Shown here in pieces: positions 15,862 to 28,300 of a stretch of 64,000 nt of DNA; the first letter of the stretch is position 1, and each line of letters starts with the position of its first letter. The notes below the pieces were generated by a model, which made no database searches, was not told where the DNA came from, and saw nothing but the letters and a program-made list of their open reading frames with translations. This DNA is from Zygnema circumcarinatum SAG 698-1b (taxonomy: Eukaryota; Plantae; Zygnematophyceae), in NCBI GenBank assembly GCA_037447605.1, contig CM074804.1:1426001-1490000 (forward strand), in the 5' to 3' direction. A program made the position numbers and the translations under genes.

Positions 15862-16038
15862 GATTGGCCACGTCAGCCAGACCTATTCTACGTGGCGGAG
15901 GGTGATTGGCCACGTTAGCCAGCTCTTTTTTTCTACGCGACGGACGGTGATTGGCCACATTATCCAACACTATCCTACGTGGTGGATGCTGATTGGCTGC
16001 TTCAGCCAACTCTAGCATACGTGGCGGGTGGTGATTGG
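15862..16038. promoter_or_regulatory. ~43-nt degenerate tandem array containing three exact ERSE-I motifs (CCAAT-N9-CCACG, minus strand)
   Basis: GATTGG at 15862, 15904, 15949, 15991 and 16033. CGTGG-N9-ATTGG exactly at 15891-15909, 15978-15996 and 16020-16038. CCACGTCA (UPRE-like TGACGTGG) at 15868-15875. Confidence 0.7.
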
Positions 16039-16556
16039 ATGACGACTGGTAATTGTCACGTCAGCCGGAGACCGTTGACATCCAAAGATTTCCAAAACGG
16101 AGAACTCGCAGCTGGTGCTGACAAAAAGGAGCTTGCAAGGACTTTCGTACGGTATGTCCGTACACTTCTGCAACGTGGCGTGTCGACATTGCGCCACGTA
16201 GGACCGTCGGCTCCCTATTCGCGTTTCCAGAATCTCTCCCGGCCAATCAGATGCGAGCAGTCTGCCGCGTGGTAGCTCCTGAGAGAAGACCCCGTCATCA
16301 TCGGCTGCGCTGATCCGACGGCCCACATTTGTACAGCTGGCAGTCTCCAGCACGTGAACCGTCGATTGATCGCCACGTGTCACCGAGACGGCCGGGTCCC
16401 AAAACCGGCCGACGGTCGCCATTGGAGGCGACAGGTGGCGATGGGGAGAGGGGTTTTGGAGGGAGCCGAGGGTTTTGGATGGGGCCGAAGGGTTTTGGAG
16501 GGCGCCGGTGAGGGCTTGAGGAAGGGTGCAGGGAGGGGGGGGAAGGTGGAGGGAAG

Positions 16557-16634
16557 ATGAGGCAGAGGGGCAGGGAGAGCAATATGCGCAGCAGGTCGTT
16601 TTCCAGGACAAGGTTCGCCATTGAAGGAGTGTAG
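16557..16634 (+). CDS. Conserved-peptide uORF of PEAMT (25 aa, MRQRGRESNMRSRSFSRTRFAIEGV)
   Basis: ATG at 16557, TAG at 16632-16634, 107 nt upstream of the PEAMT ATG. It matches the recalled land-plant PEAMT CPuORF consensus (..RGR..N.RSRSFSRSR.A.EG). It is below the length cut-off of the ORF track. Confidence 0.88.
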   Translation: MRQRGRESNMRSRSFSRTRFAIEGV

Positions 16635-16741
16635 TGAAAGGAAGGGGGGGGAAATTGGACAGTTTTCTTTATTGAGAGGATTCAGAATTAGGACCGAAAA
16701 GGAAGAGGAAAGGAAGGAGAAGGGATAAGCTGCTCTGAGCA

Positions 16742-19700
16742 ATGGCGCCGCCTCTCAATGAAGGTTTGGAAGACTGGATGCTGGCCTCGCTGTGAACTTT
16801 TTCGTATGAACTTTTGGCTTCTTGACGTGGAATTTGGATGAGAAAATTGGAATTCAGTGCTTTCATGGAATTTTGATGGCTTATGAACAGGCAATTTGGA
16901 TCGCAGAGCGTCCGAATTGCAACTGAATTTCCATTGTTGATGAAGGAATTTTGATTCTCGAGCTGAATTGCAAATGCTGGAACTCAATTGCAAACGCTGA
17001 TGTCTTAATTATTATCAATTGCTTAAGTCGAAATGAAAAAATGTTGATGCAAATTGATATTTTGCTGGAATTGTCAATTGAAACTTTAATTGAAGTTCAA
17101 ATCGTTATTGCAATTGAATTTGGAAATGTACCATTGGAACTGGCATTGTTGGAACAAATCTTGATGGCAATCTGAAGGCAGTTGATGATCTGGAATTTAA
17201 ATATTACATTTTGAATTTTAATCTTAGTTCGATTCTTGATATTGCTCTTTGACTTACTATTTCTGAAGTGGGAATCTGGATATGCAATCTGAATCGTATT
17301 TTTCAGAGAAAATCTTAGTTGAAGATTCTGTTTTCACTTCCTAGGTGGCAGTCCCAGTACTAAATCCAGGTCCATCATTCCTCAGCACTCATTCTGGCTG
17401 AATTCCAAGAAAGCTTCTAGTCAGATTTCCCTGTTCAGACACAAATGAATTTGCATAAATTCACAGAAAATCTAAGCACCTTCTTCGAGAGGTGTCTGCC
17501 AATAAGTTCCTGCAGAACATCACAGACTGAACGAAACTCTATTCCTCGATTTTTTTTGGTTTTGAGGCGTATCCAACTTTAGACCTTGCAAGGAGACTTC
17601 CTGAGCTGATTTTCGATCTTCAGATACTCAATTTCTTGAATCCTTCAACTTTCTTGACTTTCTTGACTCTCTTGACACCTTTGAATTTCTTGACTCTCCT
17701 GACTCTCACGAATTCCTTCTTGTATTGACTTCCTTGACTTGTGTGGACTTCCTTTTCCTTGCCTTTACTTGTCCGGAGTGAGGTTGCAGCGGAGCGCGAG
17801 GCGCAGGCCGCCTATTGGAGGGAGCAGAGCGCGGCGGCCGGCGCCAGCGTGGAGGCAATGATGCTGGACAGCCTGGCGGCCGCGCTAGACGCCAAGGAGC
17901 GCCCCGAGGTCAGCGAGCTTGCGGCCTTTTCTGAGTTGACTTTCAGTTAGCAAGAAAACAGTATCGTGATATCTCCCCCGAAACTGTCATTTTTAGTGTT
18001 ATGCAGTCTCCTGGTCTGGGCAGATTTTGAAGATGCTCCCTCCTGTGGCCGGCAAGACTGTGGTGGAGTTCGGCAGCGGAATCGGCCGTTTTACAGGCGA
18101 TCTGGCAGCCGAGGCGTTGCATGTGACGGCCGTTGACTTCATGGAACACCTTGTTGCCAAGGTGGGCTGCTGTTCTTCAAACCTTATCTTGATTCCTCTA
18201 TTTTACTTTACTTTAGCTTGTTTTTCTTGAAATAGTGATTTTTGCCATTTTTAATGTTTGGTAAAGCAATATGAGAAGGGCAGGTGTCCTAACTTTGTAC
18301 GCCTTTACATTTTCTATATAAGTATTGCTATATTCCCACTGCACAACTTTCTTAGTCTTCGTCTTCAGCTTTAAAAAAGTCTTCGACGATTGACACCAGG
18401 ATGACATCTGCAGAATGCAGAGAAGAACGGAAAAAGGAGCAATGTGACGCTACTATGTGCGGATGTGACGGCGCCAACAGTTCAGTTTGAACAGGAGTCC
18501 ATTGACCTCCTCTTCTCCAATTGGCTGTTCATGTACCTTTCAAATGACGAGGTCGAACCCACTATTCATCCATACTCCTGCGTCTCTCTCATCTCTTTGC
18601 TTATCTGCTCGCCCTCGCGATTCGTCCTCCTCCTTTTGCTCTTTTTATTTCTTTCGCTCTGCCTCTTCCTAGTTTCCCTCTCCTGACCGCACTACATACC
18701 GTTCCGCTCTCTTCACTCTTTCCCTCTCCTTTCCTTCTCTCCCCTCTCTCCTCCCCCCTCCCCCCTTTCCCCTCCGCCCTCCGCCCTCCGCCCTCCCCCT
18801 CCCCTCCGCCCTCCGCCCTCTGCCCTCCCCCTCCCCCTCCCCCTCTCCCTCCCCCTCCCCCTCCCCCTCCCCCTCCCCCTCCCCCTCCCCCTCCCCCTCC
18901 CCCTCCCCCTCCCCCTCCCCCTCCCCCTCCCCCTCCCCCCCTCCCCCTCCCCCTCCCCCTCCCCCTCCCCCCCTCCCTTTTTCCTGTACACATCTCTTTA
19001 ATATGGAACCTTCGGAAGCTTTAACTAATTCAAGGGGCAAGAATACACAACTTCAATCATGATATTTTCTTTCCCTGAAAGAACTCTGATTTTTCTCAAA
19101 GATGCGAATGTCTTTTTTATCCAGGTGGAAATATTGGGCCGAAAAGTTCTGGGCTGGCTTAAGCCGGGCGGAAGCCTTTTCTTCCGCGAATCGTGTTTCC
19201 ACCAATCAGGGGACAGCAAACGGAAGTCGAACCCAACGCACTACAGGGAACCTCTGTTCTACACGCAGGTGAGAGGCTCGTCACGGGCGAAAAAAAATTG
19301 ATTTCAGATTTTTTTCTGAAACTTCCTTCTTTTTTTTTTCTTACAAGGAACGGATATTTTAAGAAAGCGATATCTGTATTTTGTTACTTCTTTCTTCGAA
19401 TCTTGATTTTTTTTGTTCGGTTTTATGTTTTCGATGTTGTGAAGGCCTTCAAGAAGCTGCGGTTGAAGGATGACAATGGGGACACGTGGCAGCTCAGCCT
19501 CCAAAAGTTTTGTTGTGTCCCCGCATATGTTCGCCTGAAGCGGTCTCAAAACCAGGCACGAAAATCGAAGGAGAAAGAAGAGAAAATAATATAAAATGAT
19601 TGACAGCTTATTAACCAGTCCCTTTTCCTGTTTCCTTTCCTCGTTCTGATGATTCGTCACCTTTTTTATTTTTTATTTTTTTCCCCGGACAGTCTCAAAT

Positions 19701-21982
19701 ATTTTTCTTTTTTCTCACCTGACCGCTGCAGGTCTGTTGGCTCTGGCAAAAAATCCGTCTCGAGGACTCGCCTGAGGGCTCTGCCACCCTCGACGAGGGC
19801 CAATATTCAGTTAAAGGAATTTTGAAATACGAGCGAATTTTTGGAGCCGGATTTGTTAGCACAGGGGGCATTGGTCAGCTAACTCGCCTCGCCCACAACC
19901 TTAAAACAAAACTAAAAAACAATATGTATGAAAATAGAAAAAAAAAAATAAGAAACCGAAGGAAAGCATGAACATAAACATTAACACACGCAACTTGAAA
20001 AAGATGGGAAAACGTAACAGTAAATATGACTGATGCTATTGTGATTGGGCGGCGGCTTCAGACACTACCCGCGAGTTAGTCGCACAACTTGACTTAAAAC
20101 CGGGCGAGCGCGTTCTGGACATTGGCAGCGGCTTGGGGGGGTCGGCCCTGTACATGGCGCAGCATGACGGGGCTGACGTCACAGGCATCGACCTGTCCGT
20201 TAATATGGTAGGGACGGACTCCATGTGGGCCCCATTCCGTTTATAGTTACATTTTTATCCTGTGGGCTTACTACTATACCTTCTTCACGTGTCGATGTGC
20301 TTATTATATGGGCACTTGATTTCGAGTCTCTTTGTAGGGTGCAACCCTGTCTTATAATTCAGCACATCGTTGGAGTAAGGCTTCTAGGGAACTTGAAAAA
20401 GATGTCTATGGTGGCACCTGGAAGGTGGACGAAACATTTGCAGATCTAGACTCGCTTTTTATGCTGCGAAATTCTTCAGATATCGCTGGCAATCGAGCGA
20501 GCTATTGGCAGCCAGTGCCACGTGGAGTATGAATTGGCGGACTGTACAAAGAAGGAGTACCCCGAAGGCACCTTCGATGTCGTGTATAGTCGAGACACAA
20601 TTCTTCACATCCATGTATGTGCTGCCATTCCCGTGCTTCGTTCTATGTTAGCTTTCAGCTACAGTTTCCGTTCCATTTCCAGTTGCAGTTCCTTCTTTTT
20701 ACTTTTTTTCTTTTCTATTCATTTCATACTCTCCCTCTTTCCTTCCCCCCCAACCCTCCCCTTTCCTTTCGATTACTTTTTTTGCAATGCAGGACAAACT
20801 CGCCCTGTTCCGAAGAATTCTGAAATGGTTGAAACCGCGCGGGCGACTGCTCATCACCGACTACTGCTGCGGTGACATCACTCGAGCCTCACCCGAGTTT
20901 AGGGCTTACGTCACCCAGAGGGGTTACGACCTGCATCAAGTGGCCGACTATGGACGGGTATGGTGCACCTGTCAAGCTCAGCATGACGTCATTACTCTTT
21001 TGACTACAGTATCTCAAACAATGGCTTCACGTCTGTTCCTTCGTTTCACAAGCGAGGGGACTGCAAAAACTGGTAGTTGTCGGAGCATGCATGGGCATGC
21101 ATGGCATGATGGATGGATGGCCTGTGCATGCATGGCTTGCTCTGCAGATGTTGGAGAAAGCTGGGTTCGAGGAGGTCAAAGCTGAAGACACGACCAATCA
21201 GGTGGGAGGACGAGCCCTTTCGTTGGAACCTAACGAGTAACTGAGTCTTTATCAATTCTTGCTTTTTGGATTTGAATAAGGCCATTTTGGGTATTGAAAA
21301 ACGACGCAGCCGCTAAGTTCTCGGTCCATTTTCAGCATAGAGAACTGGACCGCCGAAATGGCACATCTTTGCTACAAATGTACAGCAGAAACTCCTTTGA
21401 GAGCCAAAGCATGTGTAAAGGAGGGAGTAAAGAGGAGAGCGTTCCTCACAGTCATAAGGGACCGACAAGAGTGAAGTTGAATTTTATTCAACCAGAAGGA
21501 AAGCTGCCCTGAAAGCCCCAGATGGAAAAATGTTTTCGAGTCTTGCTTGGTTGGTTTGGCTCAGTTTGTGGCCATTCTTGAGAACGAGCTCCGTCGAACG
21601 GAGGAGGAGAAGGACACCTTCATTGCCGAGTTCTCACAGGTCAGTTCTAAAAAAGTAAAAACCCTAAAATGCCTAAAGCACCACCTTAACTTCAAATAGA
21701 GGAGCAACGTCTTATGGGGCTGCTGGTTTCACGTGGACATCGGCGCCTATAACTTGGGAGAGGCTAACGTACGAGGGGTTGACCTAACTGAATTAATTTA
21801 AAGAGGAATTCAGGGATCTTATTAAACTGTATTTTCATCCTCTCTAGCCTCTGTTTGTTTCCTGCGCAATGTGGGCGCAGGCGGGCTATGAGGACATAGT
21901 GAGCGGATGGAAGGCCAAGCTGGCGAGGTGCGCCCAGGGAGAGCAGAAGTGGGGTCTTTTTACCGCCCGCAAACCAGCATGA
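16742..21982 (+). CDS. PEAMT: Phosphoethanolamine N-methyltransferase, bipartite plant type (13 exons)
   Basis: MAPPLNE (16742-16763) spliced to 17790 gives [22 protein letters not shown]. Further motifs: [113 protein letters not shown]. Confidence 0.97.
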
Positions 21983-23184: not shown

Positions 23185-25270
23185 ATGGCCGCCGACGCGT
23201 ACGAGGCGACGGTACTTTGCGCGCTCGCGGACGCGGTGGGCCCCGCGGCCCTCCTCGCCCCCCGCCCTGGCCATGGCCATGGCCCTGGCGGCGCGCAGTA
23301 CCTCCTGGCGGCCCCGCCCGCGCTGGCGCGCCTCGCGCTCGAGCACCGCGCGCGGCCCGGGGCGGCCATGGCGGCCGTCTTCCTGCCGAGCCTGCATCCG
23401 GCGAGAGCGGTAGGGGCCGCGGCTGAGAACCGGAATCCTTAAACCCTACATCCTGAACCCTAATCTAAACCCTAACCCTAACCTGAACTATAAACCCTAA
23501 AGATTAAACTCTAATCCCCTAAATTGTACTCACTGAATCTTGAAGCCTGGGTTAAAGTCTACAGCCCAAACGGTAGACCCTGAACCCTAAATTGGAACCT
23601 TAACTCCTAATTTCCTAACCCTAAACTCTAAACCCTTCAGTTCAAATTCAATCGATTGCAGTCGTCTTCAGTCCACCCCAATTCGAACTCAGTCGATTTC
23701 TGTCATTTGGATTCAGTCGAATCCAGTAGAACTTCAATTCGATTTAGTTCCAATTTAAATGAATTTAGTTTAGATTTACAAGAATTTAAGTTCAAACGTA
23801 GTCTAGTTTAGTCGACTTATGTCAAATTATGATTTTTTTTTTTGCTGGGCCGGGCAGGGCGGGCTGGGGGAGATTTTGCTGCGGCTGGCGAAGGACGGAC
23901 ACGGGCAGGTGGAGGTGATTGGGCCACGTGGCACTATCTCATTCGTCCACGCTCTCCGCCATATCTTCAGGTGGCGCCACCCCAAGGTGAGTCCAATGCG
24001 GCGGGCACAGCTGAAAGAAAAAAATAAGAAAAAAAAAAAAACCCCCGCAAAAGTCAAACTTGACACTTTATCTAAATTGAACTGAATGAAAGATTGAACG
24101 AATCGAAATAAGAGTTAAGATATATGGAAAATTCAGTTCAAACAGGTTACATTTGGAGTCTACATACTTGTAAATAATTCGAAATTTACATTTTTATTCT
24201 TTGTCTTTCAGAAATACTCATACTTTTAAACGATGAAATCTTTCAATTCCCTAAAGCTTAAAAATGCGAAGACCCTGCAGTCCAAAACCCTGAACCCTTA
24301 AAACCCTAAACAACTAAAACTTTCACAAGTCGTTCAACGTATGCATTTTTTTCCCCTATCCTTAATCTTCAAAGTTTAGGATTTTTTTCTAATTTTCTAA
24401 CCCCTTTTTTTTTTTTTTTCAAATCACAGGTCCTCGTCCGTGAGTGTTTCACGGGTTCCATGGAAAACGGAATTCCGTTCTACGAAGATTCACATATAGC
24501 CGTTTTTCCTCTCTCTCAAAATGCGGCTCCTCTCCCGCACTCCTACCACCTCCTCTCTCGTCCCTGCAAAAATATGAACTGCCCGGAAAAAAAAAAATCT
24601 TCTCGGTCAGCTCGGAAGCACCGTACTGAAGAAAAAAATGAAAGCAACAGCAGTGGAGTTTTAGCTAAAATTTTGGTTAACCGTTCAGCTAAAGGTCCGA
24701 CTGAAAGGTGCGGTAATGGAAATAAAAGGAAAAATAATAATGTTGGGGACAGAGGGAGTGTATATGAAAGAGGAAATTCTAAGCGGAAAAAAATGGGCTT
24801 AGCAAGTAATGGAGAAGGAGAAGAAGAAGTGGGAGAGGAGGAGGAGGAGGAAGGAGATGTTGGCAGGGAGGGGCCCAGAAAAGTAAATAATTTTAATATT
24901 TCTTCTACAGAAAAATTGTTCGGTGAACTGGATGTACTTTTTGGGGATAGCTCCGGAGGCGATTTGCGAGACGCGGTATTAAAAAAAATGACAACAGCTC
25001 CGGAAAAGTGTACGGAATCTAACAAATTCCGGAAATTTTCGGACATGGAACGCCGGGATTCCGTAAAAAAGCTGAACGAGTTGCATGAAAAGGGAGCCTC
25101 TTCAAAGAAAAGCGAAGAAAATGCGTTTAGCGAACTCGATAGAATTTTTGCTCAAGGGGATTTGTGGAGGAAAGAGCGCTTAAAGGATATTTTCGGACTA
25201 CTTGAGAAGACGAAGGAGACTGCGGCAGTCAGTTCCGTACTCAGCGACTCAACTGAAACTGAAAGTGAAG

Positions 25271-25309
<39 letters not shown>

Positions 25310-28300
25310 GGAGTGGGAGTAAGAGTGAGAGTGATAGTGGGAGTGGGAGTGAGAGTGGGAGTGAAATGGAGGGCGGTACAAAGAACGTCAGTTTCAGTAA
25401 AACAGTTGAAGAGCAGCAGCATGTCAACGGAACTGAAAGGATGTGTCCTTGTCCATGGAAGCACAGCGATGGGCAGTTTGCGGAAATTTTTCCGGAAGTT
25501 GGCGAGAACGAGAATCCGGTATTTGTGAGGGGGGAAGACGGGCAGATATTAACTGCAGAGTTTTTTTTAGCGTCCCGAAATGAAAAAAAATATAAAGGGG
25601 GAAGTGTTTCGTTTGGCTCCGTAGGGGAGGGGAAATTGGCTTGTAAAGAGGAGATTTTAGGGTTTTTTTTTTTTTTCAAGCAGCTGAATTCCGCTTTACT
25701 TGCAGTCGACTGTCGATCCGTTGATCACATTGAAGAGTTAAACCGGCTTACCGAAAACTGGCAGGTTTTTGAAAAAGACCCTGAAAACCCTAAAAACCCT
25801 AGAAACCCTAAACGCAGTAAGGAGCGGAGAGGAAAATTAGACGTCCTTGGAAATATTTTACATTTTTGTCCTCCGGAGGTTTTTGAGTTACAGGAACATC
25901 GCAGATTTATGGCCAGTTTTGGGGAAACCGTTCAACAGATTTTGGTGCAGCATGGAAACGAGCAGTTAGGGTTTCTGTCAACCCTGAAGTCGAACGCTAT
26001 TTTGAACCTGCTTAGCCCCAGAAATTTTCCGCTGCCCCCCTTTTTGGAGCAGCTGGAAAATGTTTCCGGCTGGGCTGGAGATAGAGTAGCGGCGGTGTGT
26101 GAGAGGGAGATAGGGAAGGGAGAGGGAGGGGGAGAGGGAGAGGGAGAGGGAGGGGGAGAGGGAGGGGGTGAGGGAGTGGGAAAGGAGACGAGGAATTGGC
26201 ATGACGGGAAACTGCTGATGAAAGTTGTGATAAGGAAAGAAAGGGAGAGTGGGGAGAGAGGAGAGGGAGAAGTGTGTGGGAAAGTGGGAGAGGGAGCAGG
26301 GAGAGCAAATAGTGAGAAGGAGAAAGAAGACAGAGGAGAGAGAGGTGAGAGAGAAGGGGAGAGAGCTGAAGGGAGAAGAGAGTGTCTAGGTTCATTGGAT
26401 CTGTCCATGTGTCCTTTAGTACCGAGTGTGAAAGACATTCAAGCAGAGATATTGCAAAACTGTCCCCATTGGATTTCTGAACCTAGGGAAGAAACTTCTT
26501 CCAAGAACATGAGCAGCGCTCAAGCGTTAAGGCAGAAATTATCGTCGAAGAACGGCAAAAAAGAAGAAAATTTTGAAATTATTTTTTTGGGTACTGGATG
26601 CGCGGAACCGAGCAAGCACCGGGCAAGCAGCGCTATTCTTCTCAAATTTCCGAAAATCGGAAATTTTTTGCTTTTGGACGTGGGCGGGGGAACGCTCGGG
26701 CAGCTGAAAAGAAGGTTGGGAGGAGAAGGGGCTAAAAATGTAATTAAAAATTTGGAGGCGATTTGGGTCTCGCACAAACACGCGGATCATGCGAGCGGAC
26801 TGGTCGAGCTCATTATGTCACGTGACGTCACATCGCCGGTTTTGATGGTGGTGGGGCCCACCGTTGTGGGGAGATGGCTGGAGGAGGTGAGATGGGGNNN
26901 NNNNNNNGAGGGAGGGGAGGGAGGGGAGGGAGGGAGGGAGAGCCAGTTTGAAAAATTTGGAGATGGGTTCTTTTTAGGGTTTGTTTTTAAGGGAGTCAAA
27001 CAAGGTTCTGCCGTTAAAAGGTTTAAGCTGTCGTATAAAGAGATGTGTTCATTCGGGGGTTACATTACTTTTACTCAGATATTTTAAACGCAATTAATTT
27101 CGATTCTTGCTCTCACTCCTATGCAGGTGTTTGAGTCCTTTGAACCAACCGGCCTGCAGATTCCTCCCTATAATTTTGTACATTGTGGCCATTTAGAAAA
27201 TATTTGCACCGGCAGCGGGAGAGCGGAAAAATTGCGACTAAGTCCTCGTGACAGGTGGAGGTACGAGAGGCTTCTGAAGGCCCTCAGCTTGGAGAGCTTA
27301 GAGGTGAGTTGCAGTGTGGGGGAGAGAGGGAGAGAGGGAGAGAGGGAGAGAGGGAGAGAGGGAGAGAGGGAGAGAGGGAGAGAGGGAGAGAGGCAGAGAG
27401 GGAGAGAGGGAGAGAGGGAGAGATGCAGAGAGGGAGAGAGGCAGAGAGGGAGAGAGGGAGAGAGGGAGAGAGGAAGAGAGGGAGAGAGGCAGAGAGGCAG
27501 AGAGGGAGAGAGGGAGAGAGGGAGAGAGGGAGAGAGGGAGAGAGGGAGAGAGGAGAGAGATAATGGTGGAAGAGGAGAGAAGGGAAGGGGGGACAGGCAA
27601 ATCTCTTTCTCACACCCTAAAAACGGTAACTGGATGACCAATCACATGTGTTTCTATGCTCAACGGAACTGACAGTCACGTCGCCGTTCCGTTCCGTCAG
27701 GCCGTACGGGCGATCCACTGCGCCGATTCTTGGAGCCTCATCGTGCGGTCGACGCAGGGGTGGAGTTTGTCGTATTCGGGGGACACGCGGCCGAGCAGAG
27801 CGCTCATAGAGGCGGGGAGGGGCTGCACCTTGCTCATACACGAGGCCACGTACATGGATCCGCAGTTTAACGGATTGGCGGAACAGAACCGACATAGCAC
27901 CCTGGAGGAGGCCTTGGCCGTCGGAGAGGCCATGGCGGCGGGAAGGATCATTCTCACTCATTTCAGTCAGCGGCACCGAAATGTGAGCTGGTTGACAAGG
28001 AGTGCTGGACCTCTACCTCACTCTCTCTCTCTCTTCCCTTTCTCCTCCTCCCTCCTCCCCTCTCCCCCCTATCTCCTCCGCCTCTCCCTCCCCTCTCCAA
28101 CTTCCATCTTCCCCTCCCCTCCCATCCCCCTCCGTCTTTCCCTCCCCTGCCCTCTTCCCGTCCCACTCAACTCCCTCGCCCTCTCCCTCACCTTTCCCCC
28201 ATCCCTCTCTCGCATCTCTCTCCCACTCTCTCCCTAACCCTATTAACCTAAAACCTTCAAAGTCCCAAGTATTGTTCCCCCTTGCAATGCTTATTGCGCG

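Follow-up and report, generated by a model that had tools for sequence, protein, structure and literature searches.

An HG13-type conserved-peptide upstream open reading frame ahead of PEAMT in a probable streptophyte alga

The stretch of DNA analysed here (hereafter 'the window') comprises 64,000 nucleotides of contig CM074804.1 (assembly GCA_037447605.1, positions 1,426,001 to 1,490,000 of the forward strand), and all coordinates given below are positions in the window unless another sequence is named. It contains a gene for a plant-type phosphoethanolamine N-methyltransferase (PEAMT), an enzyme of phosphocholine synthesis, preceded in its leader by a 25-codon upstream open reading frame (uORF) of the type that was catalogued in land plants as homology group 13 (HG13) and that includes the Arabidopsis conserved-peptide uORFs CPuORF30-32. 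Here, we describe this uORF and the gene that follows it, outline the distribution of the same arrangement across eukaryotes, and weigh the proposal that the peptide acts in cis as a translational brake on PEAMT.

The uORF and the gene that it precedes

The plus-strand uORF runs from an ATG to a TAG and encodes MRQRGRESNMRSRSFSRTRFAIEGV (table). The first ATG after its stop codon, at a distance of 107 nt, is that of PEAMT, and no plausible intron was found in the spacer 16635-16741. Translation and a scan of the spacer thus bear out a sequence-only reading of the window, which had placed the uORF between an ATG at 16557 and a TAG at 16634, 107 nt before the PEAMT start and with no obvious intron between them. 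The uORF start has an A at position -3 (gggaagATGa); the main start has a G at both -3 and +4 (tgagcaATGg). The leader as a whole is rich in G and A, with purines at 224 of 311 bases. Position 10 of the peptide, where published HG13 peptides usually have R, is a methionine, and initiation at this internal codon (16584) would still yield the conserved core MRSRSFSRTRFAIEGV.

As references we used the 19 land-plant HG13 peptides published in the ESUCA supplement, all of 25 amino acids (PMC7106846). They include those of AtNMT1 (MQQRGRSVNRRSRSFSRSRLAVEGH), AtNMT2 (MNQRGRSTNRRSRSFSRSRLAVEGH), AtNMT3 (MQSKGRLHNFRSRSFSRSRLAIEGS), rice Os01g50030 (MQPRGRSFNRRSRSFSRARLAIEGS), the moss Pohlia (MYQRGKSINRRSRTFSRTRIAIEGH), and Euonymus (MQQKGRLHNRRSTSFSRSRFAIEGC) (PMC7106846). 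The window peptide is equal in length to each of the 19 and identical to them at 15-18 of 25 positions, and 22 of its 25 residues are found at the same position somewhere in the set. A log-odds position matrix built from the 19 peptides alone gives the window peptide 64 bits, which is 11.4 standard deviations over the mean of the window's 25-mers; the runner-up among 58,515 stop-free 25-mers in all six frames scores -12.5. The match extends over the whole length (class II) and includes the core RSR(S/T)FSR.R.A(I/V)EG-x-stop, and the frame is AUG-initiated, on the sense strand, and upstream of the PEAMT main AUG. We therefore regard the uORF, on the alignment and the matrix score, as almost certainly a true homologue of the HG13 peptide, as the sequence-only reading had proposed from a consensus that proves to be near to the published sequences. 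That reading had also offered two replacements, S to T and L to F, as newly mapped tolerated positions; this does not hold, since mosses and Ambrosia already have T18, and Euonymus has F20.

The codons tell where the constraint lies. The window uORF and that of AtNMT1 share 17 of 25 residues, 13 of them specified by different codons (five of these 13 changes being switches between the serine or the arginine codon families), and nucleotide identity is 37 of 75, with synonymous divergence (dS) saturated by the Nei-Gojobori method (NG86). The picture is similar in comparisons with the uORFs of NMT2, NMT3, amphioxus, frog, and lamprey. As judged from these comparisons, it is the peptide that is constrained, rather than the DNA or RNA sequence. 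Conservation at the nucleotide or RNA level was considered as the cause of the similarity and is ruled out by the codon comparison and the saturated dS.

The downstream gene was modelled with the Nelumbo PEAMT as guide, by enumeration of in-frame GT/GC-AG junctions. The resulting model has 13 exons and a coding sequence of 1491 nt, and its 496-residue product has the features of a plant-type PEAMT, namely tandem S-adenosylmethionine-dependent methyltransferase domains, a length near 490 residues, and an NPTHYR-containing motif. The exon at 19122-19271 matches the Arabidopsis PMT structures 5wp5 (E 7e-27) and 5wp4 (E 3e-25). These matches and the two-domain model agree with the earlier assignment of the main frame to PEAMT. 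Exon 2 contains no in-frame ATG, and the start is therefore placed at the ATG in exon 1; an alternative in-frame donor for exon 1, at 16791, leaves it unaffected.

Table. Features of the PEAMT locus in window coordinates
Feature	Position	Strand	Remarks
Three tandem perfect CCAAT-N9-CCACG (ERSE-I-like) elements	15891-15909, 15978-15996, 16020-16038	-	
Possible further upstream ORF	16441..16560	+	39 codons, TGA stop
Small upstream ORF	16479..16511	+	10 codons, relevance uncertain
HG13-type conserved-peptide uORF	16557..16634	+	ATG start, 25 codons, then TAG; translated in the text
In-frame internal ATG within the uORF	16584..16586	+	Met10
Intercistronic spacer	16635..16741	+	107 nt, purine-rich, without ATG
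PEAMT exon 1	16742..16763	+	donor AAG/GTTTGG
PEAMT exons 2-5	17790-17908, 18024-18161, 18414-18551, 19125-19268	+	
PEAMT exons 6-9	19445-19555, 19732-19873, 20062-20207, 20480-20614	+	
PEAMT exons 10-13	20793-20957, 21148-21201, 21565-21639, 21881-21982	+	stop included

The window PEAMT has 62.7% identity with that of Mesotaenium endlicherianum and 58-60% with angiosperm sequences over the full length; the values are 58% for Selaginella, 55.5% for a fern, about 52% for frogs, and 42% for Closterium. In a maximum-likelihood tree, the embryophyte sequences form a clade that leaves the window sequence outside (support 89/94), and the window PEAMT is grouped with Mesotaenium, Closterium, and a sequence from the Logan collection, P0006 (89/93); the whole green clade has support 97/99. 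These values are moderate, and the branches of Closterium and P0006 are long. A second tree, in which metagenome sequences were included, gives the same picture. The host is accordingly most likely, as far as one protein can place it, a non-embryophyte streptophyte alga, and the premise on which the sequence-only reading had built its evolutionary argument finds support in both trees. A profile made from three scaffolds and the window's exon pieces did not return the window PEAMT from the protein collection, though that sequence scores about 766 bits against it offline; the protein thus seems to have no entry there.

Several observations on the gene and its surroundings may be recorded here. 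If the model is right, intron 6 is a GC-AG intron, since its best-fitting donor (19555/19556) reads CAG/GCACGA. A low-complexity tract lies in intron 4 (18732-18775). The TGA of the 39-codon upstream frame overlaps the start of the CPuORF as ATGA, which resembles a termination-reinitiation layout, provided that transcription starts upstream of 16441. The downstream neighbour, on the plus strand at 24460-28237, is a long-exon gene with metallo-beta-lactamase motifs (tRNase Z/ELAC-like); it carries large low-complexity inserts, acidic and Gly/Glu in composition, and the assembly has an N-gap there.

Distribution across eukaryotes

Hayden and Jorgensen (2007, PMC2075485) reported group 13 in Physcomitrella, Cycas, Xenopus laevis, and Xenopus tropicalis, and remarked that its role may be 'widespread in eukaryotes'. 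The later ESUCA survey, the scope of which was Viridiplantae transcripts only, followed HG13 down to the non-euphyllophyte embryophytes (mosses), and listed it in zero orders of 'Streptophyta other than Embryophyta' and in zero orders of chlorophytes (ESUCA 2020, PMC7106846). Our literature search found no paper on the HG13 uORF in streptophyte algae.

We scanned genomic and transcript loci of PEAMT proteins with the 11-residue core of the HG13 matrix. In these loci, uORFs score 31-38 bits on the core, and the other Arg/Ser-rich stretches that rank highest in the scans score at most 19. Among chordates, uORFs precede the annotated PEAMT starts of the frog Spea bombifrons (MRPRGKGYNKYSRSFSRTRVAIHTVIY; L007:9759-9842), amphioxus (Branchiostoma, MTQRGQERNRRSRTFSRTRVAIHST; L009:9821-9898), and lamprey (Lampetra, MLPRGRIHNRSSRSFSRTRAAIHAV...; L010:9739-9837). 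The amphioxus frame has exactly 25 codons and the lamprey frame 32; all three peptides end in AIH..., and their spacers, of 158, 102, and 163 nt, respectively, are without ATG. In a marine eukaryote with a PEAMT (P0056) that falls outside the green clade, two contigs (L003:2175-2258 and L004:2368-2451) carry a uORF of 27 codons (MSMVPNARSLKSQSFSRARVAIHAIQA). These metagenome contigs are intronless and gene-dense; the SFSR.R.AI core stands in the plant register, and an ATG-free spacer of 124 nt leads to a main frame of 592 residues. The transcript of the P0006 PEAMT (L091, Logan run ERR12684112) also carries such a uORF, of 25 codons with a 172-nt spacer (MAQRGSTNNKRSRTFSRTRLAVEGC).

Additionally, a PEAMT-based scan of JGI metagenomes found the uORF in at least 25 of 80 loci, on contigs of angiosperm, gymnosperm- or fern-like, moss, and invertebrate-like character (the last being L022, L024, L027, and L028), as well as on L068-L070. 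Many of these contigs are cDNA-like, with the uORF and the full PEAMT frame on one molecule, and in the cDNA-like contigs from land plants the spacers measure 63-128 nt. Across the survey, the peptide has two C-terminal forms: A(I/V)EG-x-stop in the green lineage, including the window, and AIH followed by 2-10 residues in animals and the protist.

Two sequences stand somewhat apart. In L021 (54-137), a metatranscriptome sequence with a PEAMT at the base of the green clade, a 27-codon uORF (MPHRRGSNNKKFQSTTNDRCRRAQKSK) ends 49 nt before the main ATG; its N-terminal half is HG13-like (RG..N.KK) and its core is not, and it may be a diverged relative of HG13. In L028 (49-147), an arthropod-like PEAMT transcript, the peptide ...RRGQPHNKHSRSFSRARNAIESQ lies in an open frame that has no AUG; initiation at another codon or an error in the contig may account for this.

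The sequence-only reading had treated the uORF as a land-plant feature, novel in an alga, and had concluded that the peptide predates land plants, should the host be a streptophyte alga. The conclusion is correct, given that the uORF precedes PEAMT in an alga, in chordates, and in a protist; the claim of novelty is not, as the peptide had been published from Xenopus in 2007. Indeed, the uORF of the window is expected and ancient rather than surprising, because the peptide also stands ahead of PEAMT in frogs, lamprey, amphioxus, and protists.

Function and alternative explanations

The best explanation of the locus, to which we assign a probability of roughly 0.8, is that the uORF is an HG13 cis-acting translational brake on PEAMT. 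In Arabidopsis, choline or phosphocholine makes CPuORF30 of XPL1/NMT1 repress the main frame (Tabuchi 2006; Alatorre-Cobos 2012, as related in PMC11062462 and PMC7503886), and ESUCA counts HG13 among the sequence-dependent regulatory CPuORFs. By analogy, it is quite likely that the uORF is a translated repressor here as well; that the repression responds to phosphocholine in this organism we consider somewhat better than an even chance.

Under this proposal, scanning ribosomes would translate the 25 codons of the uORF. An abundance of choline or phosphocholine would heighten repression by the uORF through its nascent product, an Arg/Ser-rich peptide with the C-terminal motif SFSR.R.A(I/V)EG, probably by stalling of the ribosome or slowed termination near the uORF stop. 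A stalled ribosome would block scanning or reinitiation across the 107-nt spacer, and fewer ribosomes would arrive at the PEAMT AUG. At low phosphocholine levels, the brake would be eased, more ribosomes would reach the strong PEAMT AUG, and more enzyme would be made. The net effect would be a translational end-product feedback on phosphocholine synthesis.

The strongest argument for translation is that the start, the stop, the length, and the AUG-free spacer have all been preserved although synonymous divergence is saturated against every relative. Nonetheless, a number of points weigh against the proposed brake, and these are best considered together with the alternatives to which they lend weight.

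The alternative that survives best, which we nevertheless consider unlikely, is that the uORF is translated but that PEAMT is dampened constitutively, or by a signal other than phosphocholine, in this lineage. Metabolite dependence is a result known from Arabidopsis only, and three residues of the window peptide (E7, M10, and V25) are absent from all 19 published peptides used. Moreover, if transcription starts near 16200, the AUGs at 16251 (which opens a 20-codon frame), 16441, and 16479 would all lie ahead of the CPuORF; they could change the share of ribosomes that reach it, and may add repression that is independent of peptide sequence. Against this alternative, the strict conservation of the whole peptide in plants, algae, and animals, always in linkage with PEAMT, is best fitted by a peptide function that is tied to the pathway.

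Slightly less probable still is that the uORF is a homologous DNA relic that exerts no control, being left outside the main PEAMT mRNA by a transcription start downstream of 16557 or by an intron in the 5' untranslated region. Inclusion of the uORF in the mature mRNA is indeed the weak point of the proposed brake, and is supported indirectly. Every word sampled from 16100-16740 (100%) is present in the DNA-type sequencing runs of the same organism, and the size of their contig sets, 69-252 Mb, points to a genome of some 70-100 Mb. The run that bears the label 'RNA?' (X1) contains 7% of the words of that interval versus a share of 0.49 for 16300-19300, as a relic would predict. On the other hand, 13 other runs, with transcriptome-sized contig sets of 34-48 Mb, contain 34-87% of the words from 16100-16740. 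Shares of more than about 0.29 place contigs beyond the uORF AUG only if the words are anchored at the 3' end, and the read type of these runs is undeclared.

Upstream of the uORF, by 500-650 nt, lies the tandem array of ERSE-like elements (table), a motif that the window contains nine times, where chance would give 0.05 occurrences. The array probably marks the PEAMT promoter, to go by its motif content and place, and a promoter in that position speaks against a relic. So does the intact frame, with its 25-codon length, AUG, stop, and spacer, at a divergence at which an untranslated relic would have decayed.

A relic would also be in keeping with the loss of the uORF near PEAMT in some lineages. 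We found no HG13-like ORF within 10 kb upstream of PEAMT in Closterium sp., within 6 kb upstream of it in Selaginella, around the tandem pair of PEAMT genes in the sponge Oscarella, or in the Logan transcript of P0064. In our view these absences reflect loss, strong divergence, or leaders that are incomplete, and do not count against the HG13 family: the PEAMT uORF is ancient and widespread, yet losable. As a separate observation, the PEAMT model of Closterium sp. Naga37s-1 (CAI5525706.1; L001, CANJKZ010000839.1) starts with MMLDAQ... and is without the conserved N-terminal 25 or so residues.

A role of the peptide in trans, as a small RNA-binding protein of RS-like type, is very unlikely, whether instead of or besides one as a nascent peptide in cis. 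Hayden and Jorgensen speculated in this direction from its five to seven arginines and RS-like composition (PMC2075485), but neither the present data nor the cited papers support such a role, and a trans factor would have no need of the constant physical linkage to PEAMT and the short AUG-free spacer seen in distant lineages. Lastly, although the leader is purine-rich and the peptide Arg/Ser-rich, a chance ORF that resembles HG13 through low-complexity composition has a negligible probability and is ruled out by the window-wide matrix scan (64 bits versus -12.5) and the core scores in the surveyed loci, and the length, the register of the SFSR core, the C-terminal AIEG-x-stop, and the place before PEAMT are all those of the family.

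The cis-acting brake thus remains the preferred explanation, and the locus itself offers a gain in annotation, consisting of a gene model, a uORF, and a probable promoter. The algal uORF fills the streptophyte-alga gap in the published taxonomic table of HG13 (ESUCA 2020), and its alignment shows the green-type C-terminus (AIEG-x-stop) and the 25-codon length to have been, in all appearance, in place before land plants. Of greater interest as a lead is the conservation, across kingdoms, of the entire unit of uORF, spacer, and PEAMT. A length of about 25 codons (25-32), an SR(S/T)FSR.R.AI core, and a spacing of about 100-170 nt recur in streptophyte algae, land plants, chordates, other invertebrate-like animals, and at least one protist, and the survey extends the animal remark of 2007 far past Xenopus, to amphioxus, lamprey, another frog, invertebrate-like transcripts, and a protist.

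We suggest tentatively, and with a little less than even confidence, that the PEAMT uORF is not a plant invention but a nascent-peptide sensor of phosphocholine that either was already present in the common ancestor of plants and animals or spread together with PEAMT. If its function is conserved, it would be among the oldest metabolite-sensing uORFs known and would provide a handle on the ribosomal sensing of a head-group metabolite. Its wide distribution makes the PEAMT uORF well suited to testing nascent-peptide metabolite sensing across kingdoms.

Comparison with known systems

One of the nearest known systems is formed by Arabidopsis CPuORF30, CPuORF31, and CPuORF32 (of NMT1/XPL1, NMT2, and NMT3, respectively), which, like the window uORF, have an AUG start and 25 codons and lie in a PEAMT leader with a short AUG-free spacer. 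They are identical to the window peptide at 16-17 of 25 positions and have in common with it the core N-x-R-S-R-S-F-S-R-x-R-x-A-(I/V)-E-G-x-stop. The window uORF differs from them in its E7, M10 (the internal in-frame AUG), and V25, in a spacer of 107 nt versus 66-69 nt, in the possible presence of further upstream AUGs, and in a host that is probably a non-embryophyte alga.

The HG13 uORFs of mosses (Pohlia, Physcomitrella, and the metagenome contig L014) resemble that of the window in their 25 codons, in T18 (SRTR), in AIEG, and in the spacer, which is 105 nt in L014; 17 of 25 residues are identical. At positions 6 and 14, mosses have K and T, whereas the window has R and S, as do angiosperms. 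In the algal-type transcript L091, the uORF and PEAMT lie on one molecule, and the uORF again has 25 codons and a C-terminus of the plant type (AVEG-x-stop). It is identical to the window peptide at only 15 of 25 positions, however, and has the longer spacer given above; the GC content is 67%, and the tree branch is long.

The PEAMT uORFs of animals (Xenopus, Spea, Lampetra, and Branchiostoma), the role of which is putative, share with the window an M-x-x-R-G N-terminus, N9, and the S-R-(S/T)-F-S-R-T-R-x-A-I core in the same register, and are identical to it at 16 of 25 positions. Their spacers, of 102-163 nt, bracket that of the window, and the amphioxus uORF also matches it in its number of codons. 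The difference lies at the C-terminus, where the animal peptides have A-I-H followed by 2-10 residues and those of the window and of plants have A-I-E-G-x.

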